Positions 34,357 through 39,110 of a DNA stretch of 64,000 nucleotides are shown here, in pieces. Source of the DNA: Rebecca billardiae RCC1528. Its lineage: Eukaryota; Protista; Haptophyta. The stretch's first letter is position 1; each line of letters begins with the position of its first letter. Under the pieces are notes generated by a model. That model was not told where the DNA came from. It saw only the letters and a program-made list of their open reading frames with translations, and did not search any database. The translations under genes and the position numbers were made by a program. The stretch spans positions 124,001 through 188,000 of the forward strand of contig OZ251225.1 of the NCBI GenBank assembly GCA_965240325.2, read 5' to 3'.

Positions 34357-37300
34357 AGGTGTAATGGCCGACTAGGATGGCGCACGCCCGCACCGCGTTC
34401 CCCCGCCCCTCGTGGCAGCCCATCCTGATCAGCCTTGCGCTGTCTTCGACCACGGCCGCTCTCGGCCTCACCGCTGAGACCGGCATGTCCCAGTCCAACT
34501 TGCTCGCCTTCGTCCAGGGCGAGGACTCGCTTCCTGCTCAGGACGAACAGTTTGGCAAACAACTCGAGGTCTCGTATGACAACTACTTCCGGTACTTCGA
34601 CATGTTCAACTTCAACACGATGCGGTCCAACAAGTACTCCATGTCCAAAGAGGCGTCGCTCTTTGTGATGGAGCACTTACCTGGCTCGACGCCATCTCCA
34701 ACCACTGAAGACCCTGATGACGATGATGCACGCGTGCGCGACGCTCTCCGGCGCTACCGCACATCAAACGTGCACGGCCTACACCCTGACAAGTTCTACA
34801 GCCTGACAAGTACTACGACTGGGGGCGTCCAGCCCCCATACCTCGGCATCGAGCACGAGTACATGCTCGACGTCGTACGCCAGCTGGCCGAGTGCGCCAA
34901 GGGAACCCTCAGGGACGGGCATCACAACAACACGCCCTTTCCCCCTCCGCTCCCACAACAGCGCTACACTCGGTCAGCGGGCCCCGATGGCGGGCCGTCC
35001 CTCTTCGAGCTGCACGTGCTGCGCGCCGCCGCGCAGCGCTCGCAGTCGCCCGCGGCTGGTACGTCCTACCAGCGCCGCTGGCACTCGCTCTGGGAGGGGG
35101 CCGCTCGGGACCTCCCAGGCGCCGAGCGCGCACATCGCCCCTTCGAGGCGCAGCGGCTCGGTGACTACGACCTGGCCGGTGCCCCCGGCACGACACCTCC
35201 GTTCAACGGTGGTGCCGGTGCGGGTGACGCCGGCCGGGGCGGCGGTCACGGTGGCGGTCGCGGCGGCGCGCGCGACGGCGGTCGCGGCGGTCGCGGCGGC
35301 GCGCGCGGCCGCGGCGGCCGCGGTGCGGCGCGAGACGGCGGCCGCGGCGCTGCGCGCGGCAGCGGCGGGCGCGGCGGCGCACGCGGAGGCGCTGCACCGC
35401 ACGAGCGCCCACCACCGGAGGACGGCACCGACGCGCACGGCCACCGGAAGCGACGCCGCACGGAGACATCGGAGGAGCCGACCATGCCGCCGCCGCTGCC
35501 GCGCGCGGCTGGCCAGCCCACCGTCTCCAAGTTCGCGGCGGTCGACCACCTCTCGACCTGGCAGGCGGCCGGGCTCGAGCAGGGATCGACAGTCAAGACG
35601 ATCAAGTCTGTGCCCTTCATGCTGCGCGAGCGCTGGGCACGCATCACCGCGGACACCATGTCGGCGGTGACCGAGGCCGAGCCGGACAGCCTCGAGCAGA
35701 CGCGCGCGCTCAAGGTGCTGACGCTCCTGCCGGGGCTCCTGCTGTGGCAGCCTCTGCGCGGGGGCCGCGGCCGCGCGACGCGGACCATCGAGCGCCGCTT
35801 CGGCTTGTGGGACCGCGGGGAGCTCGACACGCTCGTCGACGAGTGGGCGCAGGAGTGCCGCCGCTCCGCTGACCAGGCCGCCGCGGGGGGCGGCGAGGGG
35901 CTGGGAGACGCGCAGCGCGAGGTCAAGCGCGCCACCGAGCTGCTGGCGAAGGGCGAGGTCTCGGCGGCGGCGCGGCTGCTCGAGAGCCACGGCCTGGCTA
36001 GCATGCAGGACCAGGCCGTACAGGCGCAGATGCGCGCGAAGCACCCGCAGCGCACGTACTCGCTCGACGGCGTCCTCGACGACGACGCCCTCGACGACGC
36101 CGCCGAGTTCATCATCACGGCTGACGACATTAAGGAGGTGTACCGCGGCCTGCCGCGCGAGAAGGCGGCTGGGGCGTCGGCGTGGCGGTTTGAGTACCTC
36201 ACGGCCGTCGCGCCGACCGTGGACTTCCCCGACGACAAGGCCGCCAGCGCCCCTGAGGCGCACGCCGCGTTCGCGACGCTCTTCCTCAACAACCAGCTCC
36301 CGGGCTGGTTCAACCTCACCTTTGCGTCCGTGCGGCTCATCCCCGTGCGCAAGCGCGCCGCGAGCGCGGCCGGCGCGGAGGACGCGCGTCCGGTGGGTAT
36401 CTCGTGCGGCCTCCGCCGCGCGCTCACGCGCTGCCTGCTCCGTCGCGCGGACGTCAAGGAGATGCTGGAGTCGTACCTCGCCCCGCTGCAGCTCGGCGTC
36501 GCCGTCCCGTCGGGCGGCACGAAGCTCGTCTTTGCGATTCGCGAGCTGCTGGACGCGCACCCGGACTGGGTTCTGATCTCGTGCGACATCCGGAACGCCT
36601 TCAACGCGACGCTCCGCCGGTCGATCATCCGCGCGGTGTCGACGGCCGGCGAGCTGTCGTCGCTGACGCCGCTCGCGCTCGCGATGCTCGCTCCCAAGGC
36701 GCGCGTCTTCGATGGCGGTGGCGGCACTGGCCAGCCCATTCGGCAGCTCGACTTCCTCAGCGAGGAGGGCGTGCAGCAGGGCTCGGTCGAGGCAGCGGCC
36801 TTCTTTGCGATCGCGCTCCAGCCGCACCTGCGCGCGCTGGACGAGCGGCTGCAGCCGTGCGGGGGCGCCGCACGCGCGGGCCACGACGATGTGAGCATCA
36901 TCGGCCCGCCGTCCGAGGCCTTCCGCGCCCTCCACGAGTTCGCCGCCGCCGTGAAGGACTCGCTCGGCCTGGAGCTGCAGGTCGCCAAGACCAAGTGCTA
37001 CATCAACCCGGAGTACGACCACCTGCTGGACGAGCACCGGGGCGACGTGCCGCGCGGCACGCTGACGGACGCAGACGGCGTCGCTCACCACGGCGTCACG
37101 GTGTATGGCGTGCCCGTCGGGACCGAGGGCTACGTGGCCACCCACCTCTCTGACAAGTGTGCCGAGATCGCTGGCATCTCGAACAAGCTGATCAACAGGC
37201 TCGGCTCGGCGCACAAGCAGGGGCTGTGGGTGCTCACGCACTACTCGACCTCGACGAAGCTCGACTACTTCCTCCGCCACATCGAGCCCGACGCCACCGC

Positions 37301-39054
37301 CGAGGCGTGTGAGCGGTTTGACGCTATCATCCTCCGGCAGGCCGGCGTCGCGCTAGGCTTCCCCACCGACGACCAGCTCGACGACATCATGCTGCAGCGG
37401 CTCCGCCTGCCCGTCCGCCTCGGGGGGCTCGCCCTGCGCTCGGCGGCGCAGCGGGCACCCGCCGCCTTCTGGGCGGGGGCCCACGCCGCTGTTCCCGCGT
37501 TCCTCGACCGCCACGCCCCCATGCAGGGCGGCGTCGCCGTGCACGGCGTCCTCGAGCGCGACTCCATCGTCGCGCGCGTGGGCCGCGACGCGTTCGTGGA
37601 CATGCGCGCCGCCGGATGGCGCCAGTTTCTGCAGTCGGGCTCGGCGCTCGGGCGGACGCTCGCGACCATCTGGGAGCGCCTCCAGCTCGCCGAGCAGGAG
37701 GCGCCAGCTGTGCCCAACCGGCAGCCTTACTGCGTGCTCCACCTCCCGGCGGGTCAGGTGGCACCCACTGCACGCCGGGCTGTGGACGGCACCATCTACT
37801 ACAGCCTCGCCAAGGACATCACGGAGGACGTCGAGAACACCCACGGCTGGCTCCTGCGGCGGCAGCTCAGCTCTCTCTCGCGGGACGACCGCCGTGTGCA
37901 CCTCATCCAGAACGTGGACCGTGCCTCACTCGCGTTCGTGGGCGCGCTCCCGATCGGCAGCGCGGCGGTCCACCACCAGGGTGAGTGGCTCGAGATCGCG
38001 GCGCGCGCGCTCGGGATCCCCAGCCCGGTCTGCGCGCCGCTGGCCCAGGCCGGGGCGTACGTGCCCACGCGCTCGGGTCCTGGCATCCGGGTGGACGCGT
38101 ACGGCGACGCGCTCCTCAGCGCGTCCGGCCGCAACGCGCTCCCCGGCGACCACGTCGCACGCTACCGGCACGACCCGGTGATCCGCGTGCTGGCGGGGTT
38201 CTTCCGCACGTACGCCGGTGTGTACGCCGTGCCGGAGGACACCTGGATCTTCGGCTCGGTGCACGCCCAGTCCACCGCCCAGGCGCAGGCGGTGCTCGGC
38301 ACGGACCGCAAGCGCGTGCCGGTGGTGGACCTGAGTGCCGAGGTGCACGGCAACTGTACCCTGTTCGAGGTCAAGACCATCTCGCTGAGCCAGTCGCGCT
38401 ACAGGGTGAGCGACGGCCGCAACGGTGCGGTGCGCCACCGCGCGGAACTCGTCCCGCGCGAGCGGCGCAAGCAGCTGCAGCTCCTCGACCGCGAGGTCTA
38501 CGGCACGCTTGAGGGCCAGGTGGGCCCATACGAGGCGCGGCTCGACACCTTCCCCGCGATCGTCCCGATTGTCGTGGGGGCGTTCGGCGAGTGGAGCGCG
38601 GAGGTGGACCTCACCCTCAAGAAGATCGCCAAGATGGGGCGGGACACGTGGCGCGCGCGCCTCAGCGCGCCCTCGCGCCCCGCCGCCGAGCGCGCGCTGC
38701 TCGGCACCATGCGGCGCGAGCTGGGCATGCGCTGCCTGCGTGGCCAGGCCAAGATGCTCATCGCCCGCGCGCGCATGGCGCACGTGCGCCCGGGGGCACG
38801 CGCCCGCGGGGGCGCTGCATACGACGACTACTTCGAGACGACGGCTGACGACGCGTGGCACCGCGACCACCGCGGTGGCGCGTGCGCGTCGACGCCAGAC
38901 GGTGCGTCGAGCTTCCGCTCGGCGATGGAGTGATGGGCGACTATGAGGGGGGGGACGACGGCGAGGAGCGCTGATCCTGGTGTTTGTCTCTGCTGCTCGA
39001 TCTGCTGCTACAGCTTGCTGACTCTGACGCCTGCCCGTTGCATACCACGTCGTT
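34357..39054 (+). mobile_element. Apparently full-length CRE/R2-supergroup non-LTR retrotransposon (single ORF, RT + restriction-like endonuclease)
   Basis: Single 1518-aa ORF bounded by (TA)78 on the 5' side and aatatataatatatattaa on the 3' side; ~20-nt 5' leader, ~120-nt 3' UTR; no LTRs. Confidence 0.88.
34377..38933 (+). CDS. Reverse transcriptase / restriction-like endonuclease polyprotein
   Basis: RT blocks [61 protein letters not shown]; thumb RLPVRLGGL; RLE motifs [25 protein letters not shown]; RGG-rich segment at ~35230-35395. Confidence 0.93.
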
Positions 39055-39110
39055 AATATATAATATATATTAAGTCAGGGTCAGACTTCAGTACCAGTAT
39101 TGTTAATATA

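Follow-up and report, generated by a model that had tools for sequence, protein, structure and literature searches.

Does the long open reading frame (ORF) that borders a (TA)n tract in the genome of the haptophyte Rebecca billardiae RCC1528 belong to a damaged retrotransposon, or to a working element that inserts into TA microsatellites with an unusual set of catalytic and DNA-recognition parts? The locus lies in a 64-kb stretch of DNA, here called the window (assembly GCA_965240325.2, contig OZ251225.1, positions 124,001-188,000), and all coordinates given below are positions in that window. An original prediction, made from the sequence of the stretch, had proposed a CRE-like retrotransposon that was possibly active and specific for TA microsatellites. 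We consider it very likely that positions 34361-39070 hold a full-length and very probably still active long interspersed nuclear element (LINE, or non-long-terminal-repeat retrotransposon) of the group that carries a restriction-like endonuclease (RLE), and that this element inserts into (TA)n microsatellites through target-primed reverse transcription of its RNA.

Copies of the element in the host genome

The window has a GC content of 62-81%, and searches of the element's own genome cover a 72-Mb, 41-contig assembly. A DNA search recovers six full-length copies at 99-100% identity, together with a graded series of more than 38 5'-truncated copies that all stop at the same 3' base. Because the same 4.7-kb sequence is found elsewhere in the genome at such identity, a chance origin is excluded. 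A motif of 21 nucleotides (nt) from the 3' end occurs 407 times genome-wide (199 forward, 208 reverse), against 0 occurrences of a control motif; this count implies approximately 400 insertions, only a handful of which are full-length.

Comparison of the copies also defines the limits of the element. The sequence that they have in common runs from (G)TAATGGCCGACTAGG (34361/34362) to ...CCACGTCGTTAA, after which TA repeats begin (~39070); the extent of 34357-39075 given by the original prediction therefore captured the element, with both limits now slightly corrected. The 3' end common to the copies reads ...CGTCGTTAA(TA)n, and the copy in the window ends in ...CGTCGTTAATATATAATATATAT, without poly(A). 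The absence of poly(A) had been recognized at the outset, and the "aatatat repeats" described in its place prove to be the element's own (TA)n tail. In other copies this tail consists of TTAA followed by (TA)n and ranges from a few nt to 180 nt.

The single ORF of 1518 codons, reported as open in the original prediction, is present as described. All six full-length ORFs are intact, lie 0-17 amino acids (aa) apart, and preserve the catalytic GHDD of the reverse transcriptase (RT) unchanged in every one. Synonymous and non-synonymous changes stand at 20:10 between the two most divergent intact copies (aa 396-1518) and at 23:57 in an old, dead truncated copy, a pattern that would be expected if active lineages are under selection and dead copies decay neutrally. 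The ORF has a third-codon-position GC content (GC3) of ~0.9, similar to that of host genes, and the genome carries only this one lineage of the family to which the element belongs. Near-identity and intact ORFs together suggest that the element is very probably still active, in line with what had been suspected. It had also been asked whether the window might hold a mutant copy of an element that otherwise has a YxDD motif and a CCHC zinc knuckle; the other copies retain GHDD, and neither YxDD nor CCHC is a trait of the wider family described below. The high GC content also produces long antisense frames opposite the ORF (34974-37280 on the minus strand and others, up to 768 aa), which are not genes.

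Insertion into TA microsatellites

The junctions of 30 copies were mapped and scored for the presence, no more than 20 nt from the 5' junction, of a TA run 6 nt or longer, with the window and the distal flanks of the copies as background. Such a run is present in 23 of the 30, compared with a background of 0.9%, and TA runs of up to 180 nt occur in the tail of 24 of the 30. It is the 5' junction that identifies the TA tract as the target and not merely the tail, because truncated copies cannot supply TA at that end. Some insertions lie in the tail of an earlier copy, in tandem (L028, L021), and others form tail-to-tail inverted pairs (L008, L010), an arrangement that is expected given that (TA)n is its own reverse complement. 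Others lie in TA tracts that end unrelated repeats.

The copies are scattered over many contigs, in TA tracts, and are not found at the 28S ribosomal DNA (rDNA) site or in spliced-leader genes. A second TA microsatellite in the window, (AT)40 at 41426-41504, has no LINE inside, and TA tracts thus exist independently of the element. Insertion sites are, in sum, not random, and the junction sequences support the TA-microsatellite targeting that the original prediction had put forward.

Reverse transcriptase

A single-protein phmmer search with the ORF product against the Protein Data Bank (PDB) gave no match, an NCBIfam scan of the protein gave none, and Pfam returned RVT_1 below threshold only (E 0.014). 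A family profile built from the query and five homologues, searched against all PDB sequences, matched R2 proteins alone (E 3e-6), in an alignment that brings motifs A, B and C into register. The AlphaFold 2 (AF2) model of aa 395-1190 is of high confidence (predicted local distance difference score, pLDDT, 90.8; predicted template-modelling score, pTM, 0.92), and the top 14 Foldseek matches to it are L1 ORF2p and R2 (E 2e-14 to 2e-10). The best E value is 2e-14 for L1 ORF2p and 1e-13 for R2, with group II intron RTs at 5e-8; structural comparison with VIA gives Z 16.4 for R2 and 16.3 for L1 ORF2p. On this model the RT is LINE-type, with a fold that does not separate R2 from L1.

The catalytic motifs were compared across 91 family sequences. 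D737 of motif A is kept in 82 of 84 aligned members, the QG of motif B is near-invariant while the residues that follow it vary, and the DD of motif C is present in 88 of 89. The position that would canonically hold Y or F in motif C is hypervariable (G20 I18 D13 Y9 N6 F6 and others), and the residue preceding it is A (40) or F (31) across the family. The original prediction was thus correct in noting GHDD and an altered motif B; the divergent GHDD is a trait of a large family and not of this element alone.

Nuclease, linker and N-terminal region

The seven PDB entries that best match the AF2 model of aa 1185-1518 (pLDDT 83.8, pTM 0.80) are all R2 proteins. The model aligns with the linker and RLE of R2 (R2Bm 888-1107, R2Tg 948-1169) at Z 12.2-14.3 over 199-212 residues and 3.8-4.0 Å, and the next fold, that of cap-snatching PD-(D/E)XK nucleases, follows at Z ~6. 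The C-terminal model has, accordingly, the R2 RLE fold and the family profile matches R2, as would be anticipated for the RLE-bearing non-LTR retrotransposon originally proposed.

Conservation within the family marks a probable active site. H1265 is kept in 80 of 80 sequences, D1318 in 72 of 75, D/E1331 in 69 of 73, K1333 in 69 of 74, and E1287 in 54 of 75; E1287, D1318, E1331 and K1333 come after the RHD, and in the model the candidate residues are associated with helix 75-94 and with strands 100-102, 135-139 and 142-150 (model numbering). To judge from the sequences, these residues fit an RH...E...D...(D/E)xK nuclease, in which they may be catalytic. The conserved (D/E)xK lies in the third strand, the helix that follows contains R1355, likewise conserved, and either K1333 or R1355 may be the catalytic residue. 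The catalytic lysine of R2 lies in helix 2 (KX2KY) and not in the (D/E)XK (PMC4838377, PMC5678591), and E-PD-(D/E)xK is the motif of Holliday-junction resolvases (PMC4838377).

The protein has 14 Cys in total, none of them between aa 1119 and 1219, and no CCHC-like or C2H2 pattern anywhere along it. The zinc knuckle of R2Bm comprises residues 863-883 (PMC5678591), and residue 796 of the RT model (aa 1190) ends a span aligned to R2Bm up to residue 893. From these alignment ranges the knuckle equivalent would probably be aa ~1150-1185, a helical and Cys-free stretch. The absence of CCHC ahead of the RHD was therefore seen correctly in the original prediction; the VCAPLAQ stretch that it quoted is probably not the knuckle equivalent, and what it described as a loss is a trait of a large family.

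The N-terminal region has no recognizable zinc finger (ZF) or Myb, with no Pfam or NCBIfam match in aa 1-560 and no C2H2 pattern, although a divergent Myb might have gone undetected; both this absence and the presence of an RGG tract agree with the original prediction. Relatives have a separate ORF1 where the element has this region, for which no homologue was detected; the first 400 aa of the protein show no BLASTP similarity to the ORF1s of three relatives. The RGG tract is a candidate RNA-binding or chaperone segment and may stand in for an ORF1-type chaperone. Coordinates of these and other features are collected in Table 1.

Table 1. Features of the LINE and its junctions, in window positions.
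Feature	Position	Strand	Basis
Full-length non-LTR (LINE) retrotransposon, ~4.71 kb	34361..39070	+	Six full-length copies 99-100% identical, plus 5'-truncated copies with common 3' end
(TA)78.5 microsatellite at 5' junction, remainder of insertion target	34199..34355	.	TRF, 100% match
Few extra 5'-junction nucleotides, not in other copies	34356..34360	+	Other full-length copies begin (G)TAATGGCCGACTAGG after different bases
5' leader, 16 nt, ahead of start codon	34361..34376	+	Sequence
Single ORF, 1518 aa, stop included	34377..38933	+	Intact in 6/6 full-length copies
Lineage-specific N-terminal region, aa 1-394	34377..35558	+	No Pfam/NCBIfam match; not aligned in relatives
RGG/RG-rich tract	35229..35411	+	Sequence; putative function
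Basic patch HRKRRR, after RGG tract	35442..35459	+	Sequence
N-terminal extension, RT fingers/palm/thumb and linker, aa 395-1190	35559..37946	+	AF2 model, Foldseek, VIA, family profile
RT motif A, D737	36573..36611	+	Aligns to R2 DIAKAFDTVS
RT motif B	36762..36794	+	Aligns to R2 GVKQGDPMSP
RT motif C, catalytic GHDD, G835-D838	36879..36890	+	G835 aligns with F of R2 AFADD
Putative counterpart of R2 CCHC knuckle, aa 1150-1185, helical, Cys-free	37824..37931	+	Alignment ranges
C-terminal PD-(D/E)XK RLE and linker, aa 1185-1475	37929..38801	+	AF2 model compared with R2
SPVCAPLAQ stretch, ahead of RHD	38022..38126	+	Sequence
RHD	38166..38174	+	Sequence
Candidate nuclease active site: R1264-H1265-D1266, E1287, D1318, E1331-x-K1333	38166..38375	+	Conservation and model; putative catalysis
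3' untranslated region (UTR)	38934..39052	+	Common to all copies
TTAA(TA)n-type 3' tail, short, interrupted in window copy	39053..39070	+	Copy comparison

A large unannotated family

A word search identified five clear relatives at 30-46% identity, all of them "hypothetical" metagenome proteins. The HMMER profile search extends much further, to 20,971 cluster representatives at E<=1e-3, 9,231 at 1e-10 and 1,764 at 1e-30; many of its best 150 matches cover both RT and nuclease. Named members come from Pavlovales sp. CCMP2436 (a haptophyte), Tetraselmis striata and Closterium sp. NIES-65, and the remainder lie on 4-6-kb contigs from marine and other metagenomes. An ESM Atlas look-up returned only uninformative "hypothetical protein / RVT_1" clusters. 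A CCHC-like pattern is found in one of 188 family proteins, where it lies near the N-terminus and not between RT and nuclease. The GHDD motif, the missing CCHC knuckle and the missing ZF/Myb are, to judge from these sequences, traits of a large unannotated algal family and not defects of the copy in the window.

The family is diverse in its ends and its gene content. Two relatives at ~40-42% protein identity, P0002 and P0012, end in TTAA(TA)n-like tails, and the TA habit is consequently older than the family of copies in this genome. Two others, P0004 and P0014, have an N-terminal RNase H-like domain, and downstream of their ORFs there is a short A run (A8-A10) in place of TA. In the P0014 element (L035 2-1171), four gag-type CCHC knuckles are encoded by a separate ORF1, which overlaps ORF2 by 4 nt; the family is thus not uniformly single-ORF. 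No match to an apurinic/apyrimidinic endonuclease (APE, Exo_endo_phos) was found in the query, in P0004 or in the six distant RT matches scanned. On the P0002 contig (L031), the sequence just upstream of the ORF resembles the element's own 3' UTR, with GAACATGCTGAGCCG at both ends, which points to copies in tandem or nested within one another, or else to an artefact of assembly.

It is conceivable, if on balance doubtful, that the element in the window represents the first intact, active member of a major RLE LINE clade, so far undescribed and widespread in algae and marine plankton. Such a clade would be entirely zinc-free (without ZF, Myb or CCHC knuckle), would have kept an E-PD-(D/E)XK nuclease resembling that of the resolvase Hjc, and would accept nearly every residue in place of the "Y" of YxDD; (TA)n may be recognized in its TA lineage by annealing of the tail or by DNA structure, without recourse to a DNA-binding domain.

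Comparison with known elements

The closest known system is R2, with which the element was compared through R2Bm, R2Tg, R2Pm and the target-primed reverse transcription complexes 8gh6, 9dou, 9nl2 and 9nl3. Both have a single ORF; their RTs are LINE-type, with motifs A, B and C in alignment, and each has a C-terminal linker followed by a PD-(D/E)XK nuclease, the two nucleases sharing a fold (Z 12-14); both insert site-specifically into a repeated target and leave 5'-truncated copies. They differ in the target itself, which is 28S rDNA for R2 and (TA)n for the element, in the element's lack of N-terminal ZF/Myb and CCHC knuckle, and in motif C (GHDD, compared with FADD in R2), at a sequence identity of 10-15%. 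They also differ in the nuclease, where the conserved (D/E)xK of the element occupies the third strand and R2 has its catalytic K in helix 2 (PMC4838377, PMC5678591). RLE LINEs have been described with N-terminal ZF and/or Myb motifs and a CCHC knuckle (PMC5678591). Against the traits common to R2, R4, NeSL, HERO and CRE, then, the element has the C-terminal RLE and the repeated target, and has neither the CCHC knuckle nor the N-terminal ZF/Myb.

Insertion into simple repeats, with a tail that matches the repeat, places the element beside the RLE LINEs Dong/R4, Togen and HERO. Dong/R4 inserts into (TAA)n. Togen inserts into (TG)n, and some HERO families are likewise microsatellite-specific (PMC4640811). 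Compared by description, these elements differ in having the CCHC knuckle common to RLE LINEs (PMC5678591). Dualen/RandI, LINEs known from algae, also have a C-terminal RLE, and some relatives within the element's family share with them an RNase H; Dualen, however, has an N-terminal APE and a CCHC finger (PMC5029228), neither of which was detected in the query or in the relatives scanned. A further parallel is the RT-linker-RLE core of Prp8, which has a zinc-free knuckle between its RT-like and RLE-like domains (PMC5678591); this match is structurally weak (Z 5.7, compared with 12-14 for R2), and Prp8 is not mobile.

The literature searched, which did not include Repbase, describes neither a (TA)n-specific LINE nor a knuckle-less RLE LINE nor a haptophyte RLE LINE; in Repbase the family may already be named. 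The element can be classed among the microsatellite-specific RLE LINEs, a kind already known, and there is a moderate chance that it represents a new clade.

Mechanism and alternative explanations

Anatomy, folds, copy structure, insertion-site bias and conservation are documented directly above, and the cycle that they best support is an R2-like target-primed reverse transcription. The C-terminal nuclease would nick one strand within a TA tract, the (UA)n tail of the element RNA would pair with the nicked (TA)n strand, and the RT would prime cDNA synthesis from the freed 3' OH, with incomplete synthesis giving rise to the many 5'-truncated copies. Because (TA)n is its own reverse complement, insertion in either orientation would be possible, and old tails would become new targets. 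The cleavage site, the component that reads TA, and transcription from the 16-nt leader are parts of this cycle that we infer.

Several observations weigh against the proposed cycle, or at least against parts of it. A clear TA run is missing at the 5' junction of 7 of the 30 copies, and target-site duplications are unreadable within TA flanks. Scans of the protein with Pfam, NCBIfam and Cys/His patterns identify no recognizable DNA-binding domain to account for TA recognition. Several unrelated element families in the same genome also occupy TA tracts, and the TA preference could therefore come in part from the genome rather than from the protein. The leader, at 16 nt, leaves no room for a conventional upstream promoter; neither a promoter nor a ribozyme was found there, the Rfam scan yielding sub-threshold chance matches on the TA tract, and the predicted fold of the 3' UTR is no more stable than those of shuffled sequences (z +1.3). 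Finally, current movement is deduced from near-identity and intact ORFs.

Some of these points lead to a variant of the proposed mechanism in which the protein has no sequence-reading specificity for TA. The (UA)n tail might anneal solely to nicked (TA)n, or an Hjc-like nuclease might cut easily melted or cruciform-forming (TA)n, outside which a genome of 70% GC has no AT-rich islands. The lack of a ZF, Myb or other DNA-binding domain, the complementarity of tail and target, candidate residues at the positions of the resolvase motif E-PD-(D/E)xK (PMC4838377), and the occupation of TA tracts by unrelated families are all compatible with this variant. The precision of the 3' junction, which is always ...CGTCGTTAA and then TA, speaks against it, and TA runs as short as 6-10 nt are used, a length at which cruciform extrusion is unlikely; we regard the variant as unlikely overall, while giving it serious weight. 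It is much less probable that the TA tracts are no pre-existing target at all and are generated by the element itself through expansion of the tail at each insertion. Microsatellite tails are common among LINEs, and the length of this one is indeed variable, from a few nt to 180 nt; but TA adjoins the 5' junction of truncated copies (23 of 30 copies overall), where the element supplies none, insertions are found in TA tracts that terminate other, unrelated repeat families, and tracts without the element exist, such as that at 41426-41504.

Membership in the CRE clade, as originally proposed, is a further alternative. Like CRE1, SLACS and CZAR, which are early-branching, the element has a single ORF with an RLE C-terminal to the RT and is target-specific, and its RT has an R2-type match by sequence profile; it might then be a bona fide member of the clade (CRE1/SLACS/CZAR/MoTeR-type) with a changed target. 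In relatives, however, gag-type knuckles occur on a separate ORF1 and an RNase H lies at the N-terminus, features that are not known to be CRE traits. The target of the CRE clade is the spliced-leader gene, and that of the element is TA tracts. CRE elements often have a shortened linker (PMC5678591), which would suit membership, but the N-terminal ZF and CCHC knuckle described for all RLE LINEs, CRE included (PMC5678591), are absent across the family; with CRE compared by description, the label "CRE-like" is not demonstrated, and we consider true membership improbable. Least credible of all is that the ORF represents a dead relic or a domesticated host gene with GHDD marking an inactive polymerase. 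The weak Pfam RVT_1 match (E 0.014, below the cut-off) and the non-canonical motif C might suggest as much; set against them are approximately 400 near-identical copies with a classic 5'-truncation series and six intact ORFs, and a family in which a non-aromatic xxDD is the norm and 88 of 89 aligned members retain DD. An R2-like, TA-targeted RLE LINE remains the reading that we favor.

Neighbouring repeats and other features of the window

The element has no terminal repeats of its own. The inverted repeats that flank it in the window (1.6-2.3 kb) were considered as the termini of a DIRS-like element, and this was rejected: they are missing beside other copies of the LINE and belong to a separate multi-copy family with a ~1.6-kb repeat. 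Members of that family lie at 28666-30222 (+), 31881-34220 (-), 39103-40692 (+) and 63403-63997 (+) and are 82-91% identical; they have a TA-rich start followed by AAACTGTGCCCTGGCGGGCGGGGG and end in ...GGCCCGCCATATATA. Around TA tracts they form head-to-head and tail-to-tail stacks, and two inverted copies enclose the LINE.

Two further repeat families meet the LINE at TA tracts elsewhere in the genome. One, which ends in ...CTATCCTCAGAAAAGTTTAATCA and then TA repeats, is a recurrent site of LINE insertion (upstream flanks of L007, L023 and L027; downstream flank of L022). The other contains GGCCCGCGGTGCAGGGCGGAGCGCG... and borders LINE copies at TA tracts (downstream flanks of L009 and L029; upstream flanks of L015 and L025). 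The window also holds a ~5.8-kb tandem array at 48190-54040, with ~80% GC and a very strong GC skew of +0.34 to +0.46, whose many self-alignment offsets suggest short repeat units and which may code for repetitive protein. A ~1.2-kb direct repeat (60100-61271 and 61883-63030) has 89% identity between its two copies.

Implications

R2-type RLE LINEs are under development as site-specific DNA insertion tools, and their specificity is thought to rest on the N-terminal ZF/Myb. The CCHC knuckle, for its part, has been described as common to all LINEs. The element described here is evidently functional without the knuckle, without ZF/Myb and without the aromatic RT residue, and still reaches a single simple target with high fidelity, which makes it a natural test case for the parts of a LINE that are dispensable and a candidate for tail-guided targeting. 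If the reading of a zinc-free clade were true, it would bear on the evolution of early LINEs and of the Prp8 core, and it would offer a compact integrase whose target is perhaps set in part by its RNA tail.

The family merits a name, and it accounts for many of the "hypothetical proteins" in algal genomes and marine metagenomes. In Rebecca billardiae itself, the element helps to explain why TA tracts are nests of stacked mobile elements in the host genome.

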